A DNA stretch of 64,000 nt from Haliotis rubra (taxonomy: Eukaryota). The notes under the pieces are model-generated. The model saw only the letters and a list, made by a program, of their open reading frames with translations. It made no database searches and was not told where the DNA came from. Position 1 is the stretch's first letter. Each line of letters starts with the position of its first letter. Shown one piece after another: positions 6,495-64,000 of the stretch. The position numbers and the translations under genes are program-made. Where the stretch lies: contig NW_025767088.1 in NCBI RefSeq assembly GCF_003918875.1, positions 62,001-126,000 on the forward strand, read 5' to 3'.

Positions 6495-8421
6495 CACAGA
6501 TGAACGCTGCGTGTGTGCTGGAAGGTGAAGGCATGTGCACCACAATGATAAATTACCACAAAAAGGAGCCGCATACCAGAATATCGATATCGCTGACTAG
6601 ATACATCGGTATCAGAGTGAGTGAATAAGGTAATATTTAAGTTGGGCAAAGTTTCAGCCATATCGTGACTAAAACATGTTATACACAAATAATTAAAACT
6701 AAAACAAAGGACTGTAAAGGACAGTAAAATAACTTGATTGTCGCAGACATAGGTCCGGTATCAGAGTGTACGTGTAAGTGTACAGAGGTTAAGGGAACTT
6801 GCAACATTATTTTCTAAAAACTTGCTGATATTACAAGACATGCACAAAGAATCATCTTCTATGGTGTCTGAAGAGTAGCACATTATGATGTTGTTAAGCA
6901 TCGTTTTATGTCATGTCAAATCAAAATCCAAGAAAAACGATCCCCTTTTCAAACAGAATTTGATATTTACTTCCTGTTAATCTATGTACGCCCCTTTTAG
7001 CAATATTCCAGCATATGGGCGGGGTACACCAGAAATGGGCTTCAAACACTGTGCCCATATGGGGAATCGAACCCGGGTCTTCGGCGTGCCGAACGAACGC
7101 TTTACCACTGGGCTACCCCACCGCCCCATGTTGATTGGTACACCTACTTTGTGTGAAACAAGTCTAGATCTCTATGTTTCATGGAAGCAGATGACACCGT
7201 ATGTTCCAAACAAATCTGGGCGTTATACCAATGTAGGTATACTACTACTGCTGATTTCCAATCGGCTCTTGTGATGTAATACCCTTACATAATATACTGT
7301 AATTTACATATCATGAAGGAAATAAAAAATACTATCCATCTGTATTCATGCTACGAACAAATGTTCATATGAATAAAAGTGCGGAATCCATTTCCATATT
7401 CATAAGACATATAAGCTAAGTCAGAATCAATTGTAGGATGTCGACTAAATACGTGTTTAGGAATCGTTATCAAATTGTTATGCACACATGAACGATCGAA
7501 GATGTTAGCATGCTGCCCCACTGGTGACACCATTGTCCACCTCAATGGTCTTTAATTTCTTACAATCTTAGAATATTCATTTAAAGGTAAATCCTGCTGG
7601 TATTATCTTAACTATTGAACACACTGAATGGCATTTCGAAGAAGAACTGCAATCGTAAAGAAATATTGATGCTGTTGTGTAAAGGCATACATGAATTGAA
7701 AGGCAATAATGGATCCAAATGCATTTTTATCACACTCTTCATGAGAACAAACACAGCCCTTAAAGGCACAATATCACACATTTTCGGGAATATTTTGGCC
7801 TATATTTTATATATTAGGGGCATATGCACTCACTTTAGCTTCCTACTGATGCAATACAACCCTTATCATCCCTTATGACTTGTCTGAAATCGGTAATCGA
7901 AACTTTGAGGCGAACAGCTTCCAAACAGAGAACACTTGCCATATATGGAATGTTAACACTTGCTCCGTACAACTGTCGGTGTTTGTCGAACTGGCCTCAA
8001 TCACGCATTGCCTTATAGGATATTCGTAAAGAGCACTCCAAGGGACACAACTCTATTGGGTTCGCTTGAAATGATGTTCGGCAACTTTGCATTAATCCAT
8101 TCGAACGTTTGTAATTTAAGATTGTGATCTAAATACGTGGGTGTTTTTAAAAATAAATTATATGGTGGCTTCCCTGATAGTTAAAATTATTGAGAGAAAT
8201 GCATTATGCCAACACCAACTTGCACAGGTAAAACACTAAAATACTGAAGTAGCAGATAACAAAATGTATAATATGAATAGGACATATGTCTGTATATCAA
8301 TATGTATGCATTTACTAAATTACTATCCATGACACCATGACACTTGGTACCGTATACACATTCCTCCAAGTGGAGGCTTGGAACTCTTGACTTAACCCCT
8401 CGTCCATGTAAACGTCATTAC

Positions 8422-8431
8422 AGTGTGTGTG

Positions 8432-8463
<32 letters not shown>

Positions 8464-8471
8464 TGCGTGCG
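8422..8471. repeat. (GT)n(GCGT)n microsatellite
   Basis: Directly visible. Confidence 0.95.
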
Positions 8472-8746
8472 CACGGGAGGGGGAGATTATAAGTGTTTGA
8501 AAGAGACAGGACATATAACTGAAGTACTAAAGCATGGGTGATGATGATACGGGCAGTTACAAATTTATTGGATGAGTGGAAATGGAGATGATTAAAGTTG
8601 CCACCATTGAAGAAGAACCCAATTTCATACCTTAGTCCTTATTTGGTGATTGGTAAGTGTTCATTTATAAACTGATGCATGAGTCATAATGAAACCTTTC
8701 ATTTGGTTTCTTACAATGATCAGTGACCCTGTTTTTACTTTTAGAA

Positions 8747-11560
8747 ATGGCAGAAAAAGATGTTAACAAGTGTACACAGAACGGTATGCCGGAGGACACA
8801 CCCACAGCGTTCGCCGCTTTTCCATATCGTGTTGGGCTCACCAAAGAGGAAGTGGTTGGTTTCTACTCTAAATGGGCCGTGAATGGCAAATATGAAAAGG
8901 TATGATTCGTATAATTCATGGGCATCTAACATGAAGTCTTAATACTATTAATTATTCACAACAGTCAAACATTCTTCTTACTCCAGTGATCTCTACGTTT
9001 CAGGACTTGTGTCATGCGAATTTCAAGGGACCAGTCATTGCTGCCAACGCCTTGACAGATTATTTCAGAGGAAGCATATCCCAGACGAAAGTATTAGATG
9101 TGGCCGCAGGAACCGGCCTTGTTGGCAAACAGGTACAGGTACAGCCTAAATACACCCAAATCTATTTCACGTGTACTCTCGCTAAATGGTACATAGTGTA
9201 CAAAATATGGGTGAATGGTGTTTAAGTGTTCACTCATTTTCTCAAAGATTCTCAAATAACGTCGTATGTTGAGTCATAACTTTGTGTGGTTACACCGTGA
9301 ATGGTTCATCTATTTTACAGCTTCAGGACCGAGGATTTAAGTACCTGGATGCTCTAGAACCATGCTGCGGGCATGTTGGAACAATCCAGGAAGAAGAACA
9401 TCTACACCAACTTCTACTGTAAATTCCTGGACGACAACCGTCTCCCAATAGCAGGTCTCTCAAATATGTTCATCTATTTTACAGCTTCAGGACCGAGGAT
9501 TTAAGCATCTGGATGCTCTAGAACCAGCGGCAGGGATGTTGGAACAAGCCAGGAAGAAGAACATCTACACCAACCTCTACTGTGAGTTCCTGGACGGCAA
9601 CCGTCTCCCAATAGATGACGGTAGGTAACACCCGACCTTAGTTGGATGCAAGTAACACGCACCCTAGCACCGTTTTACCTTGAAAATATAATATACATGA
9701 AATGGTCAGGATTTTTCTTTCTACTGGAATATTAGTAAGTACCACCGTATTTTGACGAACATTTGTAACAATTATCGTTACAGACTCGTACGACTGCTGT
9801 GTAATAAGTGGTGGAATGGGAGAAGGACATATTCCATGCTGTGGGTTGCACGAGCTAATTCGACTAACTAAACCAGGTTAGATATTACATTACTGCACAT
9901 CTTGCAGAAGAGCATGGCCCCGATCCAGCAGTGTTCGTAAGGCTACGACATTCGTAAGTCTGTGGTAAACCGTAGAGTTAAGACAGGTCGTAACGTTACG
10001 AATAGTTCGTGGATCGGGACATAGGGCACTACCGTTGGATGGTTCATGTCTGAATTATCTGAAAGGTATTGATGGCAATTAGAAGCTGGTATGATGAAGA
10101 GGACAATTTTATGGATAGATAGCTTGCTTATTGCAATAGATGCGACGTTTCGGTGTAGATGCTGAAACCGTATCACGTCATCACTTTCTTCATAACGGTG
10201 TTAGCATCTAAACCGAAACATCGTATCTATTGCAACAAGAAGACAAAGTCATCAATATTCCCCGCAATGGCAAAATACTCTTCATGATTATGTCTACGAG
10301 TTATGATTGTGTCAAATATTTAGGTGAGTATATAGAAAAGTGGAAGGAGAGTATTGAAAGGTTTTTAAAGTTCTGCTCCTGAAAATAGCACTATCACCAA
10401 TTTCAGTCAAAGTGAAACTTGTTGCCATGGAAACGCCAAAATATTTTATTCAGAATTCCAAAACTACCAAAAGGCACCAGTACACCACCAGATCTATCAA
10501 TGTGCCAAGTTTGGTGAAGAAATAGTGAACGGTTTTAGAGTTCTGCTCCAGAAAAGACGAAAGTGCACGGACGGACGCACGCACGCACGCACGGACGGAG
10601 TCCATTTTAATACCCCCCGCAAAACGCGTTGCGGGGGATAATAAAGAAGTTGTCAATCCATAAAAGGTGTTCCTCTTTATCCTTGAAAGTTGGAAATCAT
10701 TCTTCTCAATTTAGATGTAACAATTATAAAAGCTGTTATCAAAACTGGTCGTTCTGAGAAGGGGGCTTAAAACCCGCCAAATTTCTATTGGGAATCGAAA
10801 GGATAAACTTAAGTTGCAATGAAAATTTATTATGCTCTGGCTTAAGGATAACATATATTTCTAAGTTTCAAAAACGCCGTGCACTATTAGCAAATTAGTC
10901 AACATTTTCAAGAGCAATATCGTGGTGGTTCTGACGACCAGGGTTCTGTATTTTTATGAGTAAACAAGCTGATGATAACACGACACTTGTAAATAAGAAA
11001 TTTGCTCTGAATGTGTAAAACCTGAAGCCCAGAGTGCACATGGGGGCCAGGGTGAGTGAGTTTAATTTTACGCCGCTCTAAGCAATGTCATGGCCCGGGA
11101 CACCAGAAATGGGCTTCACACATTGTATCCATGTTGGGAATCGAACCCGGGTCTTCGGTGTGACGACCGAACACTTTAACCACTGGGCTACCCCACCGCC
11201 CCATCGAGTTTGGAACAGACAGACCAGTGATTGATATCGTGAGCATCAGTCCACGGATAAAATCCACCAGGTGGCTACCCCGACGCACCATGAGTGACAG
11301 GGGTGAATGTATTGGAGAATTGTATGAGATGTTAATACTTGTATTCAGTAACAATTCAAGTTCAATTTTCAGGGGGTTTCGTATGCATCGTGATGTTGGA
11401 AAAATATCTCACTCAGTGCAAGGAATACATGGATGGACTTGAGCAGCTGATGAAGGACCTGGAGGATGCTGGGAAATGGCAACGATTGTCACGTGATGTC
11501 GTACCAGAATACTCACTTGGCAGGAGTGGTGTTACCTTTAAATTTAGGATATGTAAATAG
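8747..11560 (+). CDS. METTL27-like: METTL27-like methyltransferase, copy 2 (~232 aa, intact)
   Basis: Exons 8747-8899, 9004-9132, 9485-9620, 9784-9876 and 11373-11560 sum to 699 nt. Internal exon sizes (129/136/93) and phases match copy 1. A frameshifted extra exon 3 lies at 9321-9454. Confidence 0.9.
9916..10020. mobile_element. Palindromic MITE
   Basis: cccgatcca...ttcgtaa / ttacgaa...tggatcggg, with the same size and layout as the other hairpin MITEs. Confidence 0.7.
10235..10641. mobile_element. Helentron-associated (HINE-like) non-autonomous element
   Basis: It starts aacaaga, contains a (gcac/ggac)n microsatellite at 10565-10598, and has the subterminal hairpin ccccgcaa.aacgcg.ttgcgggg. 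It interrupts a Penelope-like tail (aataaagaagttg resumes at 10640). Confidence 0.55.
11052..11205 (-). mobile_element. tRNA-derived SINE family B copy
   Basis: Reverse complement of the 17864-18023 family, in intron 4 of copy 2. Confidence 0.8.
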
Positions 11561-14289
11561 AAGAATAGTTTGTATTTTTTCAATATCTAAGTTTGTAACT
11601 GTTCTGGATATCGGTGTATAACTTCACTGGTAAAGTCTCGTCAGATACGAGCCCCTTAGAGCACGTTTATATCCCAAGTTACTTCACATAATGAAACAAA
11701 GCAGATAAAGTGTTGTAGTGCATGATTGCTATATCAGATATCAGGCATATCTAAATTTCTTTTCTGGCGCATGCATAAATGCATTTTAAGTCAAGCCAGA
11801 AAATATCTATGCGCAAGGTATCCCTTTTCCATTTTTCTGTAATGAATACAAAATATTTCTGTTAAGAATAATCATTATTGGTCAAGAAACAAAATTTGTG
11901 CTCTTGAAATTATATCTCGTATAAGAGTGTTTATGAACGGGGATCTGCATGAAGAGGCAGTTATCCACATATATCTCATGCGATTCAATTAAGAGTAAAC
12001 CAGTAAATAATTTGCTTTTTTTTTTAATTGACAAGTTTCAAATGACTATTATTTATGGTCATTCACGTGTGATTGTGCAATCTTCAAATAAAAAATACCA
12101 AAGTTGCAAAACAGTATTTGTGCAGTGAATTTAATAAGCGTGAAAAGCTTACGTGATTCAAGACAGGTAACCCAGTTTACCTTTTGGCCTTACAAATATT
12201 TCTAAACTCATCTGAGCACAACAAATCATTATGTCATTGAAAATATATTTCGTGACACGGTAACTCCATATTATAATCAGTATCCGTATAGTGAGATCAG
12301 TTATTCTAATGTCCCCGGTGCGATAAATGTAAACTATAACAGACTTTGAAGTATCATCAAAAAATATAACTATTGACAGAGTCTCATTGTTGATAATGCA
12401 CATGCTTTTCAGTATAAGCACTATAGGATAGTAAGCTAAAATGTGTGCTTCAATTAGCATGCCACAAACTGATATAATGTTGGAGTGCTTTGCTTACATG
12501 GAACAGGAACCGGAATCCTGTATGCAGTGATGTTTTGATGGATTTCACTCAATAAAGCATTTGGTTACTTTTCTCAGGTTTTTGTATATGGGTACATGGA
12601 ATGTAGTATGTGATTGAGTGAGTAACTGAGGCACGGTAATAAAGTTTTATGGCCCAAGTTTCTCAGAAAATCCTAATAACATTCTGCTGTAAAACTGAAA
12701 AGCTGTGGAATGCAAATATAGAAGTAAAAGTTAAAAGAATATCAGTGATCAAACCAGCCACTCACATAATTTGATTTAAATATAAATTTAACCTTTTTTA
12801 GACAAGGAAAGCACCATATCAGCACCCTGCAGATATACCCAATACGACGCTTCCCCATGGGTACAAAAGGCACTTTAGCTTAACTGCAAAAAACAAAGCA
12901 AGTGCTTATCCTGCCGAGTTTGCTAACTGTGTCATTACTATTTGACAGTGTTTCATCAGACACATGCTGTTTTTAGCGCTTTCTTCTCATTCCGGAAATG
13001 TTCTTTGTGGTTTTATATTTGTAAGATTCTCGTTCAGCGAAACTGCCTGGAAAGCAAATCTTGGCTCTCCCATAGTTTCTTAAGATTGCTTACATGTAGC
13101 TTCGCTGACCAGTGTGAGTCCTTCCACAATCATATGCCCTTCAAATGTCTGAACTTTGAGTGTTGACCATTTTGCTCCTTGAGCCAACTGAAAAATGGAG
13201 ATATATATAACGTATCACAAATGAAATGAAGTCCTAAACAGAATCAGCGTGGCCTGGTCACAGCAGTTAATGTATTTTTAGGTGGGTAAATAGTTGTTTT
13301 AAGTTACTCTCCCTCGTGGTTGGAGGAATATACAGATTATATAGCCAGTGAACCTTAAACTAAGTCCTTCGTAGTCCTTTGGCCAGCCCGACAAAAAGCA
13401 CCTCTCCTTCTCGATGAAATCACTAAGATCTTCCTTCTAGCAAGACAGTCATTCCTCTTAAGGTCAAGCCAGCAGTCATAAACTCAGCGTTTTCCTCATA
13501 AAAGGACTTCTTGAAACTGCCACTTGGTCGAGGCTGCGTAAACCTCAGCTTTCCATCTGAGAAGTTTTGACACTGAAGTCACATATTACTAATTGGATTC
13601 TCTTCAATCTTGTTGACGAGGACACAATCTCGATTACAACCTTACACTCTCCCCAAAGGGGTACAATGCCTTTCCACACTTACGTCGACCTAATGATCAA
13701 TATATTCTTCTATTGATTCTACAATCAGTTGCGAATCAGCTTGCTATACATGTATAATATTTATCATTTCTATCTTGTATTTACATTGCACATCTGATAT
13801 GTGTACATGCAATATGTGCAACTTGTTGTCTATTACCATGTTATTCATGTTTACCTGCTGTTTATCACAAACCTTTCAGGTATATATACCTCTCAACATT
13901 TGTTGTAGTCTCTCCAACATGGTAACCGTGAAACTAACTACATCGTCGCTATATTCAGTAAACTAGAAGCTGTGTCCATGAAGTTGTATTCGTATTCATT
14001 CGCCATCGTCGCTGTATTATAAAAACAGAGTCTGTTGTCCATGAAGCTGTTCATTGGCAATCAAACAGTTAATATCACATCGTTTATTGTAATATTTTAT
14101 CTTCAGCATAAATCAGACAAATTGTGTCATCTCTGCACAACATGTAAACCTACAGAAACGATATCAAATGCATCAAATGTTATAGTTAGAGAAAACGGAA
14201 GGTCTGTCCTCAAAATTACCATGGACTGCTTCTGACAATTTCATATTCAATATGCGTCACTTGGATGAGTATCGACTGCAGATGAACTG

Positions 14290-33014: not shown

Positions 33015-34611
33015 CAGGTGCTTAAATCCTCGGTCCTGAAACTGTGACATACCTCAGCTAGATACTTAGGTCAGATGTTACCTACCGTCATCTATTGGGA
33101 GACGGTTGCCGTCCAGGAACTCACAGTAGAGATTGGTGTAAATGTTCTTCTTCCTGGCTTGTTCCAACATCCCTGCCGCTGGTTCTAGAGCATCCAGATG
33201 CTTAAATCTTCGGTCCTGAAGCTGGAAAGTGCATGACATTATTATTGTTTCTACAGTAATATGGTAAAGTCAAAATCATCCATCCTCTTTCTGAAGTGTG
33301 AACTGCAATATATTTGAAATTAACTGATGAAATTTAAATGAGCTTAAAGGCTGTACCTGCTCGCCTAAAAGACCCGTTCCCGCGGCAACGTCGAGGATAT
33401 TCACATGAGAGACGTTGTGACGGAAGTATTCAGCCACGACATCTGCAGCAATGCTTGGTCCCTTGTACCACTCGGGACATAAATCCTGAAGCCAAACACG
33501 TCATTGAGCCATGACAAATATACTCTCTCAAAACAGAAACGCATAACGAAAATGTCATTTTGATGTACTTCAACAACTCGCACATGCACTAGAGGCAGAG
33601 TGGACTACGATGCAGCAACATCAGATTCAGAGACTAATTCGTTCCATGCTGAGACGATGTCACGCAGTTCTGAACGCCAATGGTGGTCGCACAAGGTGAC
33701 TTCAAACGTCTATATGTGACCCACTAACTGACTTTTCTCGAGCTCTTATCAAACAGTGATACTGTGACATTTCCCATGTGAGATATCTTTGAATTTCATT
33801 TGCTATTAAATTCCATACGATGTAACAGAATAAAGAGTAAATTGTATTTAAAATTAATATATTCTATTTCAATGTCAAATATGTTCTCGTCACGATATGG
33901 CTGAGATATTGCCGATGTGACGTTAAATATTAACTCACTCACTCACTAAAATTAATATATGCCTTTCTTTTTTTTAGAGAGTATACATGAGTAAATATAT
34001 TGCGAACATTGCACAATTACTTTATCGGAAGCTCATTATGTGTATGTACGTAAATTCGAAAAAGGTATGACTCCTACCTGTTCATATTTCCCGTCATGCG
34101 ACCATTTAGAGTAGTACTCAACAACCTCATCAGTGCTAATCCCGACACGATGAGCTCCAGCATTAACGGTACGAGCTGGCGTGTACTATGGTTCGCTGGT
34201 ATTTCTACTTCCATTTTCCTTGGAAGTTCTCTTTTTCCATTTCTGAAACAACTTAAAATCAGAGGAGAGAAATGAAAGAACAGAATCCAAGTTACAATAC
34301 GTTTCCTATTATTCGATCGTTCGCTGTTGCGTGAACCAGCATGGACTGTTCGATTCGGTCTGTACTCCCTGGGTTTTCATTTTCCATTTCTGAAAATTTC
34401 CTATTATTAACTCGTTCACTGTTGCGTGAAAATATATCTATTTCAAAGCAAAATAATCGATATTCATTAACATTATGGGTACTTAAATGACAAAATAATT
34501 ACAATAGATGTTCGGTTTTTATTGACAAGGTACGATTATGCACAATGAAGAATTGCTATCATTTACTCAGCGTGAATTGTTGATTTATTGTGCATTTATG
34601 ATGGTAAATAT

Positions 34612-35799: not shown

Positions 35800-36376
35800 A
35801 TGCTGTTGATGTGGAGTTTCCTGGTCAAGAGGATAATACGCTCGAAACATATTTACCTGGCGTCTTGTGTTGGTTACCCAGGCATCTATAGTAACACACT
35901 GGCCGACCAGGCTTTTAAGGCAGCACTCTACGAACCTGTGACATCATTTTTCAGACCATACTCGGAATAGAAAACCTTAATTAGATCTCACATTCATGAT
36001 CTAATGCATAAGAAGTGGGATATCGAATTAAGTATAAATACGTACCATTGAATAGAGCCAAGTATTAGTTACACTATACTTCTTGGGAAGCAAATGTACT
36101 GTAAGTCCCCATGGTCCCTAGTATGGTGATCTACCTTCAGTTGTTGGCAATCTATAGCCGGTTTTCATATTGTATTGTCATTTAAAAGTAACATATTTTA
36201 GATTTAATTACTAGTCCTAAATTTATCACTGTGATAATCTAGTTGTTTTACTGTCCTTCGTCGACAGGTGTTTTATAATGTAATTGTGTTTATTGTTAAT
36301 TTATAACTTTTTAAGTCACAATATGGCTTAAATATTGCCGATGTGACTATAAATTTTAACTCACTTACTCACTCAC
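35800..36376 (+). mobile_element. 5'-truncated copy of the I/Nimb-type LINE 3' end
   Basis: It matches 52520-52630 (RNase H end) and 53307-53590 (3' UTR, tggtgatctaccttcagttg...attgccgatgtgac...actcactc). Smaller 3' tips occur at ~2905-3135 (-), 6615-6745 (-) and 33880-33946 (+). Confidence 0.8.
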
Positions 36377-37084
36377 TCTTCTTGGCCACCGCCATACAGC
36401 TGTAATACTGCGTGATAAACTGCTTGAGTGTATTGACTTCCCATCACAGGGATTAATATTTCAGTAAAACAACAATGAAGGATCCTTTTTAATAATGTTA
36501 ATCGTCATTTAATAATTGTTTGAAAGAAATAGAATTGTTTAAAAATATGAATAATATATTTTGTTAATAGATAAAGGTTTTTTAACTGGTGACTTGTTTG
36601 CAATCTGGCCAAAACATGTCACGTTGCCATTAGTAACGTGCTATCATAAAGCCAATGACTGCGACGAAAACAAAATTATTTGTAATTAAGAGACAATGGG
36701 ATGCGTGTCTAGACTGAACCTAACACAAGCTTAAGGACACTCACGTTGCAGAAACTGCATGTGTTGGTACTTGTCATTTCGAGGGAAAGTATAAATTTAT
36801 GCCTCGAATAGTGATTATGACATTTTATCAACGTTGATAGTATCGTGAACAGGTATGTGAAATTCTATATAATATCACAAATGTATTTAATTTCTGATAT
36901 TATTATGCTAATATGAACTGTTCAGAATGCATATGTCCACGGAAACGTTATACTAATTCTGTCCATTCGAGTTCCCATTACAACAGAGGCTACTTATTGG
37001 CATAACAAACAAAATCAGGGGAAAGTATTTTCATGACTCTACGATATATTGGGTATAAGCAGAAGCAAGTTTGTTCAAGAACAA

Positions 37085-47400: not shown

Positions 47401-50400
47401 AGACATACATCGTGTTGTCTATAATAGCATTGGGAATGATCTACAATCCATATCATGAGACTGACTATGCATTTATTCAATAACCTATCTCACAGGTTCA
47501 CAAATATGTTGGGCAAAAATTGATGTTCAGCAACCCATGTTGTCGTAAGAGGTAAATAATCTGATCAGGTGGTCGTTCTCACTTACTTGTTTGATGCATG
47601 CCATCGTATCCCCCTTACGAAGATCGATGCTCATAGTGTCATGACCATGTTATGTGTAACTCTTTGTGTATATCATTACATGTTACTAAAACTGAGACCT
47701 GCATATTTTTATTAACGTTACAGTAGAAGCAAGCTGTTTATATGAATATTATCTAGGAATATATTTGGGCTGTCTATAAAAAGTAGGCACTTATTGTTTT
47801 GTATTTAAAGCAATACGTTTCTGTCGTAATAGATTTTCATCAAATATTCCTGTGTGATAAAGTTGCAAATAAGGTACGACTAAATCGTTTCGGTGGACCT
47901 TCTTCAACTTCATATCTGTGCATGTAAACGTCAATGGAAGGTGTAGCTGCAAGCGGTTGAACCTGTTGTGTACTTCAGCGTGTGGATGTGGACTTGAAAC
48001 ATGTTCCCGTGATCTTGACATTGTTGATACTGACTAACATGTCAACTGGGAATACACAATGACTATTAAGAACAATAAATACAAATTGATATGAAGGAAA
48101 TGTTGCTTGAGTTATGATAAAATGACTGACTCACCATTCTTTGATGAGCAAAGAAAGAAATTTGGAATAATAGAATTATACATTTAAGACCTTTCTGTTA
48201 TGTTCTGTGATTTTAATGATAGTCTAACAGTATCTTCGACATATTTGGTATCGTTGATACTATGTGAGTGAGTATGTTTTACGTCGCGTTTAGCAATATT
48301 CCAGCAACATCACGGCGGGGGACACCATAAATGGGCTTCACACATTGCACCCTTGATACTATGTGAAGCATAGAACTGTTACAGTTGAACAGACATTATG
48401 TAACATTTGGCTGATCTAAATACAAAGTACCAACCTTTGTTATCTTGTAATGGTTTTTCATGGATACATATGTATGATCTTCAAATGATATAGCTGAATC
48501 AGAAAAAAACATCTGTTTGGAAAAATTACCTTTAATTTGTAAAGTTCAACTCATATTTTCTCATCAAATGGCCTTTATATTAAAATTTATCTTTGACCTT
48601 ACCATTTTTGTTGCTGCGATTAGCATATATGTAATATTATTGTCCACAACTTTAAATCGTGATCTAAGCATTCCAAAACTACTATTTTGATGAAAATCGG
48701 TCAATCCAAACCAGAGTTATTACACTGCACCACATTTTCACCATTTTGGGGCACCCGTGAAGAGCCACCTCCTCGTGGTAGGTGCTGGGTAACGCTAAGC
48801 GCTCTTCAACCCCCGTGTGGACCCGGGGGTATATTTGGTCCACCAACCCGTTTGCCGTGGGTTGCGCCCCTGTGTCGGTTGAGGACGGGAGCCTGGTGGT
48901 TGAGGGCACTGGTTCCAGGAATAGCGTTCCTTTGCCCAACACACCACTTCGCCCCTTACTTCACCTAGACGGGTGGTTGAATGGGCCCGGTTCAACCAAT
49001 CGGCTGGTCATGCCGAGCCCTGAGCACTAAACTTTTATTGCTCTGTTATTATTTGGCTTGGTTTTGTGATACATTTTGGAACTATTTTGTTATTTGTATG
49101 TATATAATATATGATACATGGATTTTCAAATTGAGAAAAATGCCTAGATGCTGGTGCCAGAAGGCAATGGCTCATGGGCCAAACTGGTAAGTCTTTCTAC
49201 TGGTGTATATCATCCCTATATCCCTAGTATCTGTCTGTTGGACATCCACAGGTAATAAGATACTGCCTCTCTTGGCACTCGGTGGCGGGTGGGTAGTAGG
49301 GATGACGAAACTTTATTTATACAATCATGGCGTTTCAAACCCCCCTTAAAAATCAAAGCGAACACTTGAAAACGATTCTGAGACTGATGATGTTTCTCTC
49401 AATTCGAAATCAGTGGAGTACTGGCCTAGATTCCTGGTGCTGGAAACACCCGATAAGACCCCAATTAAACTGAACCCTTTTGCTGTTGCTACGGGCATTC
49501 AAGGGATAGCGGGTGATGTAAAAAACAGGATCAATCCTTATTGAATGTGTTAAAAGACAACAAGCCACAAACTTGCTGTCAATTGATGAACTTGTTGGAG
49601 TCCCTGTTTATGTTTCTCCACACAGATCTCTCAATACCAACAGAGGGATCATAAGAGATCGGGACACACTCTTGGAAGATATGACAGAACTGGATATTGT
49701 TTATGAAATGAAAGAACAGGGAGTAACCTTTGTGAAAAGGTTTACCAGACGTCAAGGTACAGAAACAATTCCAACAAATACGTACCTTTTTTCATTTTCA
49801 TCCCCAGCAGCACCCAGATGAGTCAAAGCAGGTTATTGTAAAATTGATGTTGAAATCTATATCCCAAAGCCATTGAGATGTTTTAAATGTCACAATTTCG
49901 GCCATGGTGTAAATTCCTGCAAAAATAATATCATATGTGCGCACTGTAGTGAAACTACTCATGTCACTGAAGATTGTAAGAGTGATTTCAAAAGGTGTAA
50001 GAACTGAACTCTTTCTCAATAAATCGTGTCCAGTCTTGAAAAGAGAAATGGAAATCAACAAACTAAAATGCACAAGAAACATCACTTATATGGAAGCAAA
50101 GAAACTTGTGCCAAGTAATGAACAGACTGAGACGTATGCATCTGTGACCAAAACAATGTCAGACAGATTTGACATGGGTGAATTCCATTAACCCAAAGCC
50201 AATCGTACCATCTGATTCTGCTACCCAGACCGCTGTTCAAATTCCAGACACTGATTCTTCACCTTCTATGACAACTAAACCACCCTCTGTGGCAACTAAA
50301 CCACCTTCCGTGGCACATAAAACACCTTCACGGTCAGACTTAAATCATCAACCGTCACCAAAAGCACCGGTACCTTCTGGAAAAGGACAAACTGTTAAAA

Positions 50401-53400
50401 CAAGGTATAAAACAGATTCAACAATTTCGCGTTCAAGTCAACATGGTAGACAAGTTAAAGGATCAGATGATCCAATCAAACTGTATAACAAGTTTGGATC
50501 ACTTGAAGAGATGGATGTCTCTGAAAACATCCATTGTAGAACTGCTAGTTTGTCGCCTAAAAAATGGGCGAGGGAGATGTCCGGTTAATCCGCCAAAAAG
50601 ATGAATAGTTCTCAACCTTTGATTCAGTGGAATTGTAGATGATTTAAAGCAAATTTTAATGATTCACAATTATTTGTCCAAGACTATAAACCACCAGCAT
50701 TCTGTCTGCAGGAAACATATTTAAAGCAGACAGACCAAATTAACTTACGTCAGTACAACTCATATCATTATCAACTGTTAAAACATTTACCAGATACTTG
50801 TCTTGAAGTGCTATTATGTATCTTTGACAATATATGGACTACTGGGAATTTCCCTTCTTCATGGCGGAATGCTGTCGTCATTCCTATACCTAAACCTGGC
50901 CGGGATCATACAGATCTCTTACCAGCTGTTTATGTAAGACCATGGAGAGAATGGTCAATAACCGACTGATATGGTACTTGGAAACAAATAATCTTCTAAC
51001 AAATATTCAGTGTGGTTTTAGAAAAAATAGAAGAACCATAGATCATTTTGTTAGATTGGAAACGTTCGCAAAGGATGCTATCATCAAGAAACAACATGCT
51101 GTATCAATATTTTTCGATTTAGAATAAGCGTATAATACGACCTGGAAGTATGGAATTTTAAAAGAGCTTCATGAAATGGGATTAAGAGGCATTTTGTCTC
51201 AATTTATATCTCAGTTTTTAACAGATCGGCAGTTCCAGGTACGTGTGGGTTCCACCATGTCTGATATGTATGATCAAGACCAAGGTGTACCACAAGGTAG
51301 CATATATCTGTAACGTTATTCAGTATAAAAATAAACAGCTTATCTAAAGTTTTAAATGAATCCATTGATGGTTCATTATTTGTTGATGATTTTAATGTGT
51401 CATGTCGAGGTAAAAATGTACACACGATTGAGAGACAATTGCAATTATGCCTCAATAAAATTAATGATTGGTCAGAACGAAATGGTTTTAAGTTTTCAAA
51501 AACTAAAACTAATTGCATTCATTTCTGTCGGAACTATAAGCCGCACAGAGACCCAGAATTAACATTAAAATTGTAAAGGAAGCTAAATTTCTGGGAATAA
51601 TATTTGACCATAATCTTACTTTCTTACCACATATTAAATCTCTGAGAGCTAAATGTCTGAAGGCACTTGATTTATTAAAGGTTGTTTCAAACTCCAAGTG
51701 GGGAGGGGACCAGTCAACCCTCCTTCACTTATACAGATCACTCGTCCGTTCTAAACTCGTTATGGATCCATCATTTATGGTGGAGCCTGCAAGTGCAATC
51801 CTGAATTATAAGATTCTGTTCATCACCAAGGTCTCAGACTTTGTGTTGGATCTTTCCGAACTTCTCCTATTGACAGTCTTTCTGTAGAGGCTGATGAGCC
51901 ATCACTCAAACAACGCCGTATAAAATTATCGTTACAATATGTCACAAAACTATATTCTAGTGAGTCTAACCCTGCATATAACTGTGTTTTTAATCCTCTT
52001 TATGAGGATCTGTACAATAAAAAGTCTTCTCTTGTTCCGCCTCATGGGCTCAGAATTAAACCATTCATTTCTGCTGCCGGCATTGAGCTGCAAAACATAT
52101 CTCCTTAGCGTCTTCTTTCTTCTCCTCCTTGGCAACTGGTGAGGCCTGAAGTTGACCTAACTATGACAAATTTTAAGAAATCAGAAACGAATGAATTACA
52201 ATATAAACAGGAATATAATCAATTAAAAATTAAATATAATACATACAAGTCCTTATTTACAGATGGGTCCAACGATGGTGGCGCAGTAGCTTGTGCCACT
52301 GTTATTGGATCAAAAATAATATCTTCTAGATTACCTGGCAACAGCTCTATTTTCACAGCGGAAGCTAATGCCATACTCACAGTTCTTAAATATATTAATA
52401 AAAAACCTAAATATAAACAATACATAATATTTTCAGATTCTCTTTCTTGCCTTCAGGTGATTGAAAAAACATCCACTTTTAATTGAAATCGTTGAATTAT
52501 ATAATGATCTTGCTACTGGCCAATGCGACATCGTCTTTTGTTGGTTACCCAGCCATGTGGGAGAATCTCTGGTACCACAATGGCGGATTTCGCTGCTAAG
52601 GCAGCACTCAATAAATCTGTGACCCCACTTCTTATCCCATATTCTAATTATAAAGCCGTGATTAGATCATATATCCGAGATCTAATGCAAAAGAAGTAGG
52701 ACGACCAAGTAGGTATCAATAAATTACACGAAATTAAATCGGTTACACCTACTTGGGTTGTCAGTCCAGGTTTGAGGAGGTCATCATGCGACGATGTCGC
52801 ATTGGCCAGACAAGATATACACATGAATATTTATTGAAAGGTGAAGATCCTCCATTCTGTATCCCTTGTGATGAAAGAATCACGGTCAAGCGTGTCCTGC
52901 TTAACTGCATTGATTTTTCCATCACAAGGGATAAATATTTCAGTGTCAAAACACTGAAGGATCTTTTTTGTACTGTAAATTATCATTTAATACATGTTTT
53001 TTTTAAAGAAATATAATTCTTGCATAAATTAAATCTTGAATAATATGTTTGGTATATATTTAAATGGTATTTTAAGCATGGTAGTATGAATTAGCAACTG
53101 CGATTGTTAGTGGCTGTATCCTCAAAGGGGGTTAAAGTATTGTCCTCCTGAAAGGGTACGTACGTCCCAAATACTTTCAAAGTCAATTTCGCACAACCAT
53201 ACTTTTTAATCGTAGTATTTGTGTTATTTTAAAACTTTCGGCTAAATCTTCTTACATCACCAACATCTGAAGGGATGATGTAAATCCAGCTAGGGTCCAT
53301 GCAGGTAGCAAAAGTAATGTAAGTCCCCATGTTCCTTGTATGGTGATCTACCTTCAGTTGTTAGCGATCTATAGCCCGTGTTTTATATTGTATTGTCTTC

Positions 53401-54246
53401 TTTAATTAAAATCTTTTAGTTTAACATGCTAGTTTTATGTTCAGATATGTGATATTCTAGTATTTTTACTGTCCATCGTCGACAGGTTTTACTCTCCAAA
53501 ATGTTTTCATTTTTATTGTCTAAATTGTTTTCGTCACTATATGGCTGAGATATTGCCGATGTGACGTTAAATATTAATTCACTCACTCACCATTTTGGGG
53601 GTCTGGCTTCTAGACCAAATTCCTTGGTCAGCATCAATGACGATCCAGTAGATGTCACCACAAAGGAAAGTGGCCTGATACTTGGATTATTTGATCAAGA
53701 CAGATCACCGGTTTGAGAGTGACTTTGCGTATATGTGTAAATTTGATCTCGTCGCTGGTTGGCTGAAATAATGCCGACGCAAGGTGAGACTTTGACTCAG
53801 AGTCAGATATGTCCTAGTGCGGTTCTAGCCAACAAACACGCTTACGAACATATGTCAGAATGTTCGTTACTTACAGCGTATGGCTCTGTGCATGAACTGA
53901 GAATTTGATAAGGGATGGAGAATTATAACGACTAAACGTATACCGTTTTGGACGTCGGTTGGATCTTTCACAGGTGCAATCTGCTGAAGGTGAATATGAT
54001 GCAATTCCTGAAACGTGTAACACATGATGTCTGTAGTATATGGACAATTTGTACCTGACAGGGGGTCTTGTCTGCATCGTAATGAGGGAGGAATATCTGA
54101 CCAGTGTCAAGGAGTACCGCGATAGACTGGAACCGCTGATGAAGAAACTGGAGGAGGATGGGAAACTGAAACAACTGTCTCGTGATGTTGTGTCTCGGTA
54201 TTCCTTTGACAATAACGGAGTTGTCTATGAATTACTAGTTTGTTAA
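38405..54246 (+). CDS. METTL27-like: METTL27-like methyltransferase, copy 6 (~232 aa, intact ORF, TE-expanded introns)
   Basis: Exons 38405-38560, 41683-41811, 42352-42487, 43113-43205 and 54062-54246 sum to 699 nt. Intron 1 is ~3.1 kb and intron 4 is ~10.9 kb. A frameshifted extra exon 3 lies at ~42203-42321. Confidence 0.85.
38659..38696 (-). ncRNA. Minimal type I hammerhead ribozyme motif (U3-A8 variant) in the Penelope pLTR
   Basis: The minus strand reads GC-TTGATAA-CGGTGT-TAGAACCT-ACACTG-AAACGTC-GC, giving a UUGANAA/GAAA core, stem II, a palindromic ACGT stem III and a GUC cleavage triplet. Confidence 0.65.
39591..39628 (+). ncRNA. Minimal type I hammerhead ribozyme motif, second (inverted) copy
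   Basis: Sequence: GC-TTGATAA-TGGTGT-TAGAACCT-ACACCG-AAACGTC-GC. Confidence 0.65.
42728..42965 (-). mobile_element. SINE family A copy in intron 3 of copy 6
   Basis: A (gttt)n tail plus the family body. Confidence 0.8.
48750..48807 (+). ncRNA. HDV-like self-cleaving ribozyme fold at the LINE 5' terminus
   Basis: Sequence: GGCACCC-GT-GAAGAGCC-ACC-TCCTCGT-GGT-AGGTGCT-GG-GTAAC-GCTAA-GCGCTCTTC. P1 is GGCACC/GGTGCT with a G1.U wobble; P2 is GAAGAGC/GCTCTTC; P3 is ACC/GGT; L3 is UCCUCGU; P1.1 is CC/GG; J4/2 is GCUAA with the catalytic C. G1 coincides with the TSD-defined start of the element. Confidence 0.85.
48809..48843 (+). ncRNA. H-type pseudoknot in the LINE 5' UTR
   Basis: S1 is ACCCCCG/CGGGGGT (7 bp), L1 is T, S2 is GTGGACC/GGTCCAC (7 bp), and L3 is ATATTT. 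It is followed by the hairpin CAACCC/GGGTTG. Confidence 0.65.
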
Positions 54247-57119: not shown

Positions 57120-60100
57120 ATGGCCTGGATGTGTTATTCTAGGACATTAAGGAAGAATGTAAATGTGGCATGGCTAGTTCTTCTGGTTACGATACAACTG
57201 ATGTTTGGTAAGTGTTCAGATTTCCACTTTGTCATTCCTGTCTTGTTGTAGATACCCATCTATCATTGTAGTTTGTCGTCAATGGATGCAAAACGGAGAA
57301 TGATTCTCCTTTCAAGAGTGAGTGAATATGGTTTCACACCGCTTTTAGCAATATCAGAGAGGGGGACACCAGAAATGTTCTTCATACATTGTACCAATAT
57401 AAGGGAATCGAATCTAGGTCGTCGTCGTGACCACTGAACGCCTTAACCACTAGGCTATCCCGCAGACACTCCTATCCATAATAACTACAGCTAATATATT
57501 AAATGTTTATAGTTGGTGTGACAATTAAACAGCAAATGTGAGATAAGATGAATTAGTGAATATGATAAGTACAAAATGTGTTTTTCAAATGCCGATGACG
57601 TAGGTTGAACACCCGGATGTACCTATCCTGAGCAGGGGTGGTCACTCGTGGTCGTCCACTTCTTAGGCGATCTCGCGTCGAATTGAATGCTGTATAACGG
57701 GCCCACAGACGAGATATTGTGCTTTGGTGGACGTTATAATGACGTGCAACGTCGTTCATTCCTCATCAATATTTGTGATACAATGGAGTAAATGTATCGG
57801 GCTTTTATAGTCATTGTCTCTACTGATGAATTCCACTCATTTCACGTGCATTGTGATCAACATGTGCGTTTTCATGCATTTTCTTCACAATTGCTAACAA
57901 CGGTAACATGAAGTTGTTTTGGTTGTGTTGCGCGACATAACCATTAAAAATCACATACATCACATCATTCAAACATAAACATAGTCTTAATCATAGATTG
58001 CCGATATGAAAATGCAATAGAAAATCTCAATCCCCTGTGCGTTTCTTTTTTTGAAGACTGTATATAACTGAAGCTGTCATTTTTTAAGTGTGAAGCCCAT
58101 TTCTGGTGTCCCCCGCCGTGATATTGCTGGAATATTGCTAAAATCGGCATAAAACTTAACTCACTCAATGGTTATAATTATGTTTGTCTAGAGTTGCATG
58201 TGTTCCTAAACTACTTCTTTCATCTATCTTCTATCCTTAGCTAACACCGTCACATCTACTTCTGCCGGCGCCACTACAACTTCAAATGGAGCTGACATCA
58301 CCACGAGTTCCACAGTGGTTGATCCATTAACAACAGTCACGGACACGGCTGCTGACGTCACTACTGTTTCATTTCCAACAACCACAAGTTATCCAATCAC
58401 ATCCACTACCACATCAACTACCACATCTACTACCACAGTTGGTGCCAATACATCTACTACCACAGCTGACGCCATCACATCTACTACCGCAGTTGGTGCC
58501 AATACATCTACTACCACAGTTGACTCCATCACATCTACTACCACAGCTGACGCCATCACACCTACTACCGCAGCTGACGCTATAACTACCACCACAGCTG
58601 ACGTCATCACATCTACCGCCACAGCTGGCACCATTACATCTACTACCAAACCTGGCACCATCACTTCTACTACTACAGCTGACGCTACAACTACTACCAC
58701 ACCTGGCACCATCACTTCTACTAATACAGCTGACGCTACAACTACTACCACACCTGACGCTACAACTACTACCACAGCTGACGGTACAACTACTACCACA
58801 GCCGACGCTACAACTACTACCACCCCTGACACCATCACTTCTACTACTACAGCAGACGCTACAACTACTACCACAGTTGACTCCATCACATCTACTACCA
58901 CAGCTGACCCCATCACATTTACTATCGCAGCTGACGCTACAACTACTACCACAGCTGACGTCATCACATCTACCGCCACAGCTAGCACCAAAACATGACT
59001 CCATCACATCTTTCTACTACCACAACTGACGCCAACTATACACACCTGGACCATCACTTCGCAGCTGCCGACGCTACAACTACTACCACAGCTGACGTCT
59101 CACAACTACCGCCACAGCTAGCACCAAAACATCTACTACCACACCCGACACCATCATTTCTACTACTACAGCTGACGCTACAACTACTACCACACCTGAC
59201 GCCATCACTTCTACTACAGCCTGACGCTACAACTACTACTACAACTGACGCTACAACTACTACCACACCTGACACCATCACTTTTCCTACTACAGCTGAC
59301 GCATACACTTCTACTACCACACCTGACACCATCACTTCTACAACTACAGTGACGCTACAACTACTACCACACCTGACACCATCACTTCTACTACTACAGC
59401 TGACGCTACAACTACTACCACACCTGGCACCATCACTTCTACTACTACAGCCGACGCTACAACTACTACCACACCTGGCACCATCACTTCTACAACTACA
59501 GCCGACGCTACAACTACTACCACACCTGGCACCATCACTTCTACTACTACAGCCGACGCTACAACTACTACCACACCTGGCACCATTACTTACTACTACC
59601 ACTGACGCCGACTACTACCAACACCATACTACCACACCGACGCTACAACTACTACCATCACTTCTACTACTATAGCTGACGCTACAACTACTACCACAGC
59701 CGACGCTACAACTACTACCACACCTGGCACCATCACTTCTACTACTATAGCTGACGCTAAAACTACTACTACAGCTGACGCTAAAACTACTACCACTCCT
59801 GGCACCATCACTTCTACTACTACAGCTGACGCTACAACTACTACCACAGCTGACGCCTGGCAACATCACTTCCACTACCAGGCTGACCATCAATTCTACT
59901 ACTACAGCTGACGCTACAACTACTACCACAGCTGACGCTACAACTACTACCACAGCTGACGCTACAACTACTACCACACCCGACATCATCACTTCTACTA
60001 CTACAGCTGACGCTACAACTACTACCACAGCTGACGCTACAACTACTACCACACCTGACATCACCACTTCTACTACTACAGCTGACGCTACAACTACTAC

Positions 60101-63100
60101 CACACCTGACACCATCACTTCTACTACTACAGCTGACGCTACAACTACTACCACAGCCGTCCCTACAACTATTACCACACCTGACACCATCACTTCTACT
60201 ATTACAGCTGACGCTACAACTACTACAACAGCTGACGCTACAACTACTACCACAGCCGACGCTACAACTACTACCACACCTGACACCACCACTTCTACTA
60301 CTACAGCTGACGCTACAACTACTACCACAGCTGACGCTACAACTACTACCACACCTGGTACCATCACTTCTACTACTACAGCCGACGCTACAACTACTAC
60401 CACACCTGACACCATCACTTCTACTACCACAGCTGACGCTACAACTACTACCAAACCTGACACCATCACTTCTACTACTACAGCCGACGCTACAACTACT
60501 ACCACAGCTGACGCTACAACTACTACCACACCTGACATCACCACTTCTACTACTACAGCCGACGCTACAACTACTACCACACCTGGTACCATCACTTCTA
60601 CTACTACAGCTGACGCTACAACTACTACCACACCTGACACCATCACTTCTACTACTACAGCTGACGCTACAACTACTACCACACCTGACGCCATCACATC
60701 TACTAACACAGGTGATGCCATCACATCTAATGCCACAGCTGACGCCAACACATCTACTACCACAGCTGATGCTACAACTACTACCACACCTGACACCATC
60801 ACTTCTACCACTACAACTGACGCTACAACTACTACCACAGCCGACGCTACAACTTCTACCACACCTGATACCATCTCTTCTACCACTACAACTGACGCTA
60901 CAACTACTACCGCACCTGACGCCATTACATCTACCGCCACAGCTGACGCCATCACATCTACTAACTCAGGTGACGCCATGAAATCTACCGCAACAGCTGA
61001 CGCCATCACTTCTACTACCACAGCCTACGCTACAACTACTACTACACCTGCCACCATCACATCTACTACTACAGCTGACGCCAGCACAGCTGATGCCATC
61101 ACATCTACTACCACCGTTGATTCTATCATATTAACAACTACAGCTGAAGTGGCAACTACTACCACAGCTGACGTTATAACTACTACCACAGCTGACGTCA
61201 TCACATCTACTACCACAGCTGACGTCATCACATCTAATACTACAGCTAATGCTATCACATCTACTGCAAAAGCTCACGCTACAACATCTACTACCATAAC
61301 TCCGGCCTCCACATCTACAACCTCACCTGATACCATCACGACTCCTATCACAGCTGATGCCATCACATCCGCTACAACTACTACCACACCTGACACCATC
61401 ACTTCTACTTCTACAGCCGACGCTACAACTACTACCACACCTGACACCATCACTTCTACTACTACAGCTGACGCTAAAACTACTACCACACCTGACGCCA
61501 TCACATCTACTAACACAGGTGACGCCATCACATCTAATGCCACAGCTGACGCCAACACATCTACTACCACAGCTGATGCTACAACTACTACCACACCTGA
61601 CACCATCACTTCTACCACTACAACTGACGCTACAACTACTACCACACCTGGCACCATCACTTCTACTACTACAGCTGACGCTACAACTACTACCACACCT
61701 GGCACCATCACGTCTACAACTACAGCCGACGCTACAACTACTACCACACCTGGCACCATTACTTCTACTACCACAGCCGACGCTACAACTACTACCACAC
61801 CTTGCACCATCACTTCTACTACTATAGCTGACGCTACAACTACTACCACAGCCGACGCTACAACTACTACCACACCTGGCACCATCACTTCTACTACTAT
61901 AGCTGACGCTACAACTACTACTACAGCTGACGCTAAAACTACTACCACTCCTGGCACCATCACTTCTACTACTACAGCTGACGCTACAACTACTACCACA
62001 GCTGACGCTACAACTACTACCACTCCTGGCACCATCACTTCTACTACCACAGTTGACGCTACAACTACTACCACAGCTGACGCTACAACTACTACCACAG
62101 CTGACGCTACAACTACTACCACACCCTACATCATCACTTCTACTACTACAGCTGACGCTACAACTACTACCACAGCTGACGCTACAACTACTACCACACC
62201 TGACATCACCACTTCTACTACTACAGCTGACGCTACAACTACTACCACACCTGACACCATCACTTCTACTACTACAGCTGACGCTACAACTACTACCACA
62301 GCCGTCCCTACAACTATTACCACACCTGACACCATCACTTCTACTACTACAGCTGACGCTACAACTACTACTACAGCTGACGCTAAAACTACTACCACAC
62401 CTGACGCTACAACTACTACCACACCTGACCCTACAACTACTACCACACCTGACGCCATCACTTCTTCTACTACAGCTGACGGTACAACTACTACCACACC
62501 TGGCACCATCACTTTTACTTCTACAGCTGACGCTACAACTACTACCACACCTGACACCATCACTTCTACTACTACAGCTGACGCTACAACTACTACTACA
62601 CCTGACACCATCACTTCTACAACTACAGCTGACGCTACAACTACTACCACAGCCGTCGCTACAACTACAACCACACCTGGCACCATCACTTCTACTACTA
62701 CAGCTGACGCTACAACTACTACCACAGCTGACGCTTCAACTACTACCACACCTGGCACCATCACATCTACCACCACAGCTGACGCCATCACATCTACCAA
62801 CACAGGTGACGCCATCACATCCACCGCAACAGCTGACGCCATCACATCTACTACCAAAGCCTACGCTACAACTATTAACACACCTGCCACCATCACATCT
62901 ACTAATACAGCCGACGCCAGCACAGCTGATGCCATCACATCTACTACCACCGTTGATTCTATCATATTAACAACTACAGCTGAAGCGGCAACTACTACCA
63001 CAGCTGACGTTACAACTACTACCACAGCTGACGTCATCACATCTAATACTACAGCTAATGCTATCACATCTACTGCAAAAGCTCACGCTACAACATCTAC

Positions 63101-64000
63101 TACCATAACTCCGGCCTCCACATCTACAACCACACCTGATACCATCACGACTCCTATCACAGCTGACGTCAGCACATCTGCTACCACAGCTGACACGGCA
63201 ACTACTACCACAGCTGACGCCATCACAACCACTACAACAGCTGACGTCATCACATCTACTACCACAGCTGACACGGCAACTACTACCACAGCTGACGCCA
63301 TCACATCTGCTACCACCGTTGACTCTATCACATCTACTACCACAGCTGACACGGCAACTACTAACAGAGCTGACGCCATCACGACTAATACCACAGCTGA
63401 CGTCATCACATCTACTACCACAGCTGACACAACAACTACAGCTAACTCCACGACTTCTCCTACTGCTGACACCACAACTACAGTTAACACCACGAATACT
63501 CCTCCAGCTGAAACGACACCTACAGCTAATGCCACGACGTATCGTACAGCTGACACCAGTACTACAGCTAACACCATACCTACAGCTGACACCAGTACTA
63601 CAACTAACGCCACGACTCCTACAGCTCACACAAGTACTACAGGTAACGCCATGACTTATTCAACTGCTGACACCACAACAACAGCTAACGCCATGACTTC
63701 TGCTACAGCTGACACTACAACTACAGCTAACGCCACGACGTCTCCAACTGCTGACACAACAACAACAGCTAACGCCATGACTTCTGCTACAGCTGACACT
63801 ACAACTACAGCTAACGTCACGACGTCTCCTACAGCTGACACCACAACAACAGCTAACGCCATGACTTCTGCTACAGCTGACACTCCAACTACAGGTAACG
63901 CCACGACGTCTCCAACTGCTGACACCACAACTACAGCTAACTGTACGACGACAGCTACAGCTGAAACCAGTACTACAAATAATGCCACGACGTCTCCTAC
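57120..64000 (+). CDS. Secreted Thr-rich mucin-like protein (5' part; continues beyond the window)
   Basis: Exon 57120-57207 encodes MAWMCYSRTLRKNVNVAWLVLLVTIQLMF (signal-peptide-like) and ends in phase 1 at G|GTAAG. A phase-compatible acceptor (ctatccttag) opens a huge exon at 58241 of TTTADATTTTTPDTITS repeats. Frame breaks are confined to ~58985-59890; the frame appears open from ~59890 to the window end. Confidence 0.75.
57585..57960 (-). mobile_element. Tc1 transposase N-terminal HTH relic in mucin intron 1
   Basis: DVARHYNVHQSTISRLWARY...DRLRSGRPRVTTPAQDRYIR contains the paired-like HTH and the GRPR motif. Confidence 0.8.
58390..64000 (+). repeat. Coding tandem repeat of the mucin PTS domain (24- and 48-bp units, kb-scale higher-order duplications)
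   Basis: Units are gctgacgctacaactactaccaca and cctgacaccatcacttctactactaca. The distinctive block gttgattctatcatattaacaactacagctgaa occurs near 61115 and near 62953. Confidence 0.95.

Follow-up and report, generated by a model that had tools for sequence, protein, structure and literature searches.

A minimal HDV-like ribozyme predicted at the 5′ end of an RNase H-bearing LINE family in abalone

Introduction

HDV-like ribozymes, self-cleaving RNAs that share the fold of the ribozyme in hepatitis delta virus (HDV), are an established way for promoter-less long interspersed nuclear elements (LINEs) to set the 5′ end of their RNA. Here we analyze a stretch of 64,000 nts of the Haliotis rubra genome (assembly GCF_003918875.1, contig NW_025767088.1, positions 62,001 to 126,000 of the forward strand), which we refer to as the window, and in which a sequence-only reading had proposed such a ribozyme at the start of an RNase H-bearing LINE. 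Taking the comparative evidence from sequences together, we find it very probable that positions 48750–48808 are a copy of a genuine minimal HDV-like self-cleaving ribozyme, one without the P4 helix, that heads a family of RNase H-bearing LINEs in abalone-like gastropods and, as it appears, also a short element present in far greater numbers. In the window, the ribozyme constitutes the first bases of a decayed 4.8-kb LINE with pieces of an apurinic/apyrimidinic endonuclease (APE), a reverse transcriptase (RT) and an RNase H.

The ribozyme fold

We number the ribozyme such that position n corresponds to window coordinate 48749 + n. The helix pairs are read straight from the letters of the window, and they have also been enumerated by a script. 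All the helices of the HDV nested double pseudoknot are found in 48750–48808 on the forward strand, and in the canonical order. The 5′ strand of P1 (48750–48756, positions 1–7) pairs with 48780–48786 (positions 31–37) by a G1·U37 wobble (G48750·T48786 in the DNA), five Watson-Crick pairs, and a C7·A31 mismatch (C48756·A48780). The P2 helix has eight Watson-Crick pairs between 48758–48765 (positions 9–16) and 48801–48808 (positions 52–59). P3 (ACC/GGT, positions 18–20 with 28–30) surrounds the loop L3 (TCCTCGT), the two together spanning 48767–48779, and its columns are invariant in the alignment. P1.1 pairs C22 and C23 (C48771, C48772) with G38 and G39 (G48787, G48788), which follow the 3′ strand of P1 directly, so that P1 and P1.1 share the segment 48780–48788 that appears both in the pair listing and in the covariation alignment. 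P4 is absent. Between P1.1 and J4/2 there are instead six unpaired bases (GTAACG), and this linker together with J4/2 (CTAAGC) occupies 48789–48800. J4/2 opens with C46 (C48795), the predicted catalytic cytosine, which is invariant in 14 of the 14 aligned ribozymes. The scissile bond is predicted to lie 5′ of G48750. Having a few unpaired bases in place of P4 and a total length of 59 nts, the motif has the make-up of the minimal drz class (~50–60 nts).

The sequence-only reading had listed these same P1, P2, P3, and P1.1 pairings along with a nearly absent P4, and the script recovers every one of them. The extent of the motif needs a small correction: P2 has eight pairs and not seven, so the motif ends at 48808 and not at 48807.

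The 5′ end of the family

We aligned the Logan contigs of two DNA runs (X1 and X4) and of two RNA runs to positions 48500–49500 of the window. The summed contig depth climbs about 30-fold or more at 48750, and drops again at about 49026. In X1, unrelated upstream sequence appears before 48750 in 92 contigs and before 48749 in another 36 (128 in total); in X4, the corresponding numbers are 96 and 26 (122 in total). The agreement among contig sequences upstream of the junction is only 0.36–0.42, so the flanks differ from one another, and a highly abundant repeat has its 5′ end at 48750.

The same contigs inform about the mismatch in P1, which is the sole flaw of the fold. Position 48780 is an A in the window but a G in ~97% of the family contig depth in both DNA runs, so the family has a full 7-bp P1 and the mismatch is private to this copy. 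Among the best-supported family differences listed, those inside the ribozyme are at 48780, at 48800 (unpaired, C to A in 14–26%), and at 48802 (rare).

The LINE 5′ untranslated region (UTR) at 49214–49500 has a depth hundreds of times below that of the head, and it is this contrast that places the ~277-nt head also on a far more abundant short element, one that apparently exists as judged from depth ratios alone. The block at 49146–49213 is likewise hundreds of times deeper than the 5′ UTR next to it, and several contigs join 49022/49026 to 49155/49157, which suggests a very abundant short element in which the blocks 48750–49026 and 49146–49213 of the LINE head are joined together.

The window LINE itself is bounded by a target-site duplication of 12–14 bp. 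The 5′ copy (TCACCATTTTGG) is at 48738–48749 and may reach one or two Gs into 48750–48751, and the 3′ copy (TCACCATTTTGG) is found by sequence match at 53587–53598. Because of a run of Gs, the 5′ junction is ambiguous by 0–2 nts in this copy; the family-level data place it at 48750.

Relatives in other abalone assemblies

With the ORF1 piece of the window LINE as query, a search without a profile reports 208 proteins at E ≤ 1e-10; those with a named source belong to Haliotis asinina, H. cracherodii, Patella caerulea, and Saccostrea cucullata. In four LINE copies (two of them in the locus L016, and one each in L017 and L027), the similarity to the window starts exactly at G48750. The head in these three loci is 76–78% identical to that of the window, and the remaining 5′ UTR can hardly be aligned. 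Their P1 reads GGCACTC...GAGTGCT versus GGCACCC...GGGTGCT in the window family, that is, a compensatory change from C6-G32 to U6-A32. For two other ORF1 relatives, L018 and L019, the upstream sequence is shorter than 460 nts and would not extend to a head. As a separate observation, L016 has nested insertions at 2048–2333: one of its two LINE copies was inserted into the RNase H region of a second LINE from the same group, and the (CTCA)n tail of a further element is found just upstream.

The relative in L027, from H. cracherodii, is a 6.2-kb copy at 5851–12024 with uninterrupted open reading frames for ORF1 (429 aa) and ORF2 (1228 aa), the latter including the domains Exo_endo_phos, RVT_1, and RNase_H (34.5 bits). 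The Rfam scores for L027 are 27.5 and 24.4 bits. This copy has its own target-site duplication of 13–14 bp placed directly against G1. Thus, the proposed coincidence of the predicted cleavage site with the insertion junction is true both in the window and in an independent full-length element with a duplication of its own. The mapping of genomic 5′ ends, by contig breaks and by the four LINE copies, agrees on G48750, and among the copies examined, we see none that extends upstream without conserving the pairings, an outcome that would have spoken against the proposal. In full-length copies, the ribozyme coincides exactly with the 5′ end, and the lineage has retained it.

A second, diverged ribozyme and the covariation signal

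We built a covariance model from an alignment, A2, that includes two phage examples of the motif (described below). Beyond the sequences used in training, the model matches only two loci, L020 and L022, both at 2195–2240 and with 21.3 bits. Both are LINE copies from Haliotis asinina (GCA_037392515.2), with an ORF1 47% identical to the window piece. The two loci become alike at 2193–2195, so that the covariance-model match is again at the 5′ end of the element.

The whole motif in these copies is a second HDV-like ribozyme of 68 nts (2195–2262 in both L020 and L022), and its first base is a C, not a G. The numbering of the window ribozyme holds through position 39. P1 is CCCCCAC/GTGGGGG, with seven Watson-Crick pairs, four of them different from those of the window family. 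P2 is an entirely different 8-bp helix, and P1.1 is a C-G plus a U-A pair, a compensatory change. P3 is ACC/GGT, L3 is TCTTCGT, J4/2 is GCGAA, and after P1.1 there is a 4-bp P4 with a UUU loop. Independent Rfam models have their best matches on this ribozyme (in L020), RF02682 with 34.3 bits (E = 4.6e-05) and RF00094, the HDV ribozyme itself, with 29.7 bits (E = 0.009), both with full-length alignments.

Two alignments have been tested for covariation. In A4, which has abalone LINE sequences only, 95% of the cells are paired in comparison with 42–57% in slid controls, five pairs have changed on both sides, and the observed covariation is reached in 0 of 500 shuffles. Given how few independent events there are in these sequences, we regard the A4 test as supportive but not overwhelming. 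In A2, with the two phage examples added, 95.5% of the cells are paired (35–47% in slid controls), and eight pairs are double-changed. The double changes fall in P1, P2, and P1.1. The covariation that the sequence-only reading had asked to look for across copies is observed in both A2 and A4: the helices covary and the core stays fixed.

Phage ribozymes with the same core

The core of the window ribozyme can also be used as a pattern. We scanned metagenome and viral contigs for L3, followed by ten free bases, followed by the 13-nt stretch from P1.1 to J4/2 (GGGTAACGCTAAG). The scan reports 11 loci in metagenomes, and 3 in viral contigs that duplicate metagenome ones. A 7-bp P1 is found in 9 of the 11 loci, on wholly unrelated helix sequences, and eight of those nine have a complete P2 of 6–9 bp. 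The P2 of the ninth, L003, is cut by the end of the contig; L003 is 89% identical to the window ribozyme, and the assembly it belongs to, GCA_002753775.1, also has the closest ORF1 relative. In the two remaining loci, L001 and L005, no P1 forms; they may be degenerate and were set aside.

Several of the loci are beside phage tRNAs, which identifies them as the theta/minimal drz class: the ribozyme in L002 begins 2 nts after a tRNA-Leu, and L007 and L011 are in phage tRNA arrays. On the side, two of these contigs carry ribozymes in pairs. L002, a phage or giant-virus contig, has two minimal HDV-like ribozymes among its tRNA genes (9932–9991 and 10080–10139, both on the reverse strand), and so does L007 (957–1010 and 1718–1776, also on the reverse strand), whose tRNAs include a suppressor with a CUA anticodon. 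Such pairs among tRNAs are the typical theta-ribozyme context.

Four of the four minimal drz/theta ribozymes tested by Kienbeck et al. 2024 cleaved in vitro, and a change of the catalytic C to U inactivates them (PMC10879173). In that class J4/2 opens with the catalytic C, ~99% of the members were assigned to phages, and a eukaryotic origin was left open; no examples are reported from the eukaryote search of that study (RefSeq complete genomes plus human and mouse) (PMC10879173). A tRNA search of 47500–50000 in the window finds none. This result, together with the eukaryotic LINE context, indicates that the abalone motif is not a theta ribozyme by context, even though it is a minimal drz in form.

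Weighing the evidence

Several results weigh against a ribozyme at 48750–48808. This copy carries the P1 mismatch at A48780, a caveat for the window sequence. The best Rfam match, RF02682, scores 23.5 bits versus a gathering threshold of 44. Nested minimum free energy (MFE) folding is no better than that of shuffled sequences (z = −0.5 for the motif). Most abalone copies are close kin, so the covariation within the LINEs rests on few independent events. The pattern and the alignment that bring in the phage sequences were seeded by the window core, thus the core identity is there by construction; the pairing at the free positions is not. No covariance-model match is found in the up to 3 kb upstream of the ORF1 relatives L023 (Patella), L024, L025 (Saccostrea), and L026, a negative of little weight as the 5′ ends of these elements are undefined. 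Finally, in the RNA run X13 two contigs extend across the junction out of unrelated upstream sequence, which fits read-through transcription or DNA carry-over; the RNA runs consist of assembled contigs, which cannot show processed ends.

Can the single-sequence statistics be informative for a motif of this kind? At gathering thresholds, Rfam reports no match in the whole window. In a permissive scan of 251 nts, RF02682 (HDV-F-prausnitzii) is the best match, located at exactly 48750–48806 with E = 0.017, a value that is not significant if scaled to the whole window; the alignment covers the full model length with P4 deleted. A partial match to drz-agam-1 is reported as well. The relatives score below the gathering threshold too, with the 27.5 bits of L027 and the 34.3 bits of L020. 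The Rfam HDV models penalize a missing P4, and they are unable to score P2 or P1.1. The MFE z-scores range from −0.4 to −0.7 across the motif with and without flank and two of the relatives, and the test is uninformative because the fold is a pseudoknot. Loose HDV descriptors produce many chance sites in AT-rich DNA, also in the window, and are unusable as statistics. With single-sequence statistics this weak, the case rests on the comparative evidence.

It is that evidence which speaks to the question of chance. A fortuitous likeness to the HDV fold in a GC-rich 5′ UTR would agree with the sub-threshold Rfam scores, the many chance matches of loose descriptors in the same window, and the MFE z-scores that are not significant, but it would have to place the motif precisely where six LINE copies from at least three assemblies have their 5′ end, rewrite all helices compensatorily in a second family, and repair in the rest of the family a mismatch private to one copy. 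We strongly disfavor this explanation and give it almost no weight. A more serious proposal is that the fold is real and selected but not catalytic: a structured 5′ element for binding of the element's own protein, for translation or stability, or acting at the DNA level as an internal promoter in the manner of Pr77, with the 5′ end set by initiation at G1. The fusion of the ribozyme to a conserved and structured 220-nt domain is in its favor, and so is L1Tc, in which the same 77 nts serve as promoter and ribozyme (PMC3383444). Yet the catalytic C and the whole L3 and J4/2 core are invariant, and letter-identical to those of phage ribozymes that cleave; helices that covary around a fixed core are what a ribozyme should produce, and not a DNA promoter; and the structured-element roles are compatible with cleavage anyway. 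We consider a non-catalytic element quite improbable.

A different kind of doubt concerns only the sequence in the window. Its LINE is dead, with broken frames and ~1.3 kb less than its open-frame relative, and A48780 deviates from ~97% of the family, so one may ask whether the mismatch disables the ribozyme in a locus that is now silent. On the other hand, six pairs of P1 as well as P2, P3, P1.1, and the core are intact, and read-through transcription of the locus, if it occurs, may still give an RNA that cuts. That this copy is an inert fossil has in our view slightly less than an even chance, and it bears on this copy and not on the identity of the motif. The identification of the motif as a minimal HDV-like ribozyme heading a LINE family thus remains our preferred interpretation.

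The role of such a ribozyme can be proposed by analogy with R2, RTE, and L1Tc (PMC3774820, PMC3185411, PMC4035085). Most likely, the RNA trims itself from longer transcripts. The element would be transcribed inside a longer read-through transcript, the nested double pseudoknot would fold, and C48795 (C46), acting in acid-base catalysis, would cut 5′ of G48750. The freed RNA would have a 5′-OH and start exactly at G1, and target-primed reverse transcription proceeding to the end of that RNA would produce full-length insertions with G1 as their first base, immediately behind the target-site duplication.

The LINE behind the ribozyme

We located the pieces of the LINE in stop-free frames of the forward strand and by a domain profile search. 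After the ribozyme comes the rest of the conserved head (48809–49026), GC-rich, predicted to be structured, and deeply covered by contigs, and then the remaining, little conserved 5′ UTR (49027–49521), which includes a second conserved and abundant block at about 49137–49190. The decayed coding region extends over 49522–53013, with frameshifts and deletions. It includes an ORF1 piece (gag-like, 49522–49818), an APE piece (about 50643–50966), the RT (50894–51884; RVT_1, E = 1e-06 to 4e-08), the RNase H (52109–52483; RNase_H with 22.2 bits and E = 1.8e-04, below the Pfam cutoff), and a C-terminal Cys-rich piece (52738–53013). At its 3′ end the LINE has a short (TCAC)n tail (53579–53586), and L027 has a tail of the same kind. 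The frames are repeatedly broken and there are internal deletions: this copy is a decayed insertion, a relic of the process and not an active source.

The description of the element as an RNase H-bearing LINE stands, with APE, RT, and RNase H pieces in the window and the same domains in the open-frame L027. The APE, RT, and RNase H set of ORF2 is present, and other clades that bear an RNase H are Ingi, Tad1, LOA, and Outcast. The label I/Nimb is a guess of the sequence-only reading.

The domain at 48809–49026 is 76–78% conserved among LINE subfamilies, unlike the rest of the 5′ UTR, and it is predicted to fold into long helices. A hairpin at about 48974–48998 has three adjacent compensatory pair changes, and near 48843 other subfamilies are longer by ~34 bases. 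This domain may have a role in translation, in protein binding, or in stability. Within it, a loose HDV descriptor also matches 48851–48895, ~100 nts downstream of the ribozyme, where the sequence is conserved and the helices, reminiscent of those of HDV, are rich in G·U pairs; the same match occurs in L016 (2470–2522 and 6347–6391), L017 (2458–2502), and L027 (5987–6031). It may be an artifact of the descriptor on a conserved structured region.

A BLAST search of the head against the window finds no second copy, only relatives of the LINE 3′ tail at ~33.9 and 36.1–36.6 kb. In that part of the window, the stretches 33856–33942, 35861–36040, 36086–36368, and 36420–36585 are 70–86% identical to the last ~1 kb of the LINE, and could represent truncated copies, or else short elements with the same tail as the LINE. 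The flank upstream of the LINE (48500–48737) is itself repetitive, with contig depths of 16,000–116,000 and family-wide substitutions, so the LINE was inserted into another repeat. Farther away, 58200–64000 is a long repetitive region with a strong skew of C over G and of A over T on the forward strand, and with an open frame exceeding 1400 codons, which has abundant Thr/Ala/Asp/Ser repeats and a mucin-like appearance.

Comparison with known systems

Ribozyme-terminated retrotransposons reportedly include R2, R4, R6, SART, Baggins, and RTE, as Eickbush in 2010 and Ruminski in 2011 are said to have described. To our knowledge, their ribozymes keep the P4 helix. Like the abalone LINE, these elements have an HDV-like ribozyme at the exact 5′ junction, and in R2-type elements cleavage determines the RNA's 5′ end, which by analogy may be the case here. 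The abalone LINE differs from this set in having an APE and an RNase H, two open reading frames, and a non-site-specific insertion with a target-site duplication. The non-autonomous derivatives of R2 called SIDE retain the ribozyme (PMC3414825).

The nearest analogue is the pair formed by L1Tc and NARTc, an RNase H-bearing LINE and a short derivative with a common ribozyme head. The LINEs of the L1Tc/ingi clade are also RNase H-bearing and APE-type, and their first ~60–80 nts are an HDV-like ribozyme, Pr77/L1TcRz (PMC3185411, PMC4035085, PMC3383444). In NARTc, RIME, and SIDER, the head is common to the LINE and to far more numerous non-autonomous elements, as we propose for abalone, and the role proposed for L1Tc, release from co-transcripts, is also the same. 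The differences are that the host here is a mollusc and not a trypanosomatid, that the abalone ribozyme is smaller and without P4, that promoter activity is known for the L1Tc Pr77 and not for the abalone head, and that the abalone head continues into a further conserved structured domain.

In form, the closest ribozymes are the phage minimal drz (drz-Mtgn) or theta ribozymes of Caudoviricetes, which are P4-less, 51–60 nts long, and like the abalone ribozyme have the catalytic C as the first base of J4/2 (PMC10879173). Examples beside phage tRNAs have the L3 loop and the 13-nt stretch (GGGTAACGCTAAG) in letter-identical form, an identity imposed by the search. The two differ in context: theta ribozymes process the 3′ trailers of phage tRNAs, and the abalone ribozyme heads a eukaryotic retrotransposon. 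In comparison with the genomic and antigenomic HDV ribozymes (RF00094), the window ribozyme has the same nested double pseudoknot, the G1·U wobble, and a nearly identical L3, but it has no P4 and it scores below the Rfam threshold. J4/2 is CUAA-like in the window ribozyme, and GCGAA in its H. asinina relative.

A full-text literature search, with most subscription journals outside its scope, gave no paper on HDV-like ribozymes in LINEs of molluscs or of the I/Nimb type. The P4-less form is already known from phages and metagenomes; its use at the head of a metazoan LINE appears to be new.

Outlook

If our identification is correct, the use of HDV-like ribozymes to define LINE 5′ ends would extend to an RNase H-bearing LINE group of molluscs, and the minimal P4-less form would gain a eukaryotic home and a job, the 5′ end of a LINE, with cleavage proposed by analogy. 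One genus offers two diverged natural versions of the ribozyme, one of 59 nts without P4 and another of 68 nts with a 4-bp P4, as material for studying structure and function.

A more speculative idea, which we put forward tentatively and think unlikely on balance, is that the ribozyme together with its ~220-nt domain is a portable head module that defines metazoan non-autonomous retroelements with no need of a Pol III promoter: these elements would ride on read-through transcripts, release themselves at G1, and rely on the LINE for their copying. If so, the thousands of heads in abalone transcripts would be built-in RNA cleavage sites in host genes, and the core shared with the phage theta ribozymes would reflect either extreme convergence toward a single minimal form or an ancient transfer among mobile elements. 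In any case, the apparently very abundant short element with the same head could matter for transcript processing in abalone.

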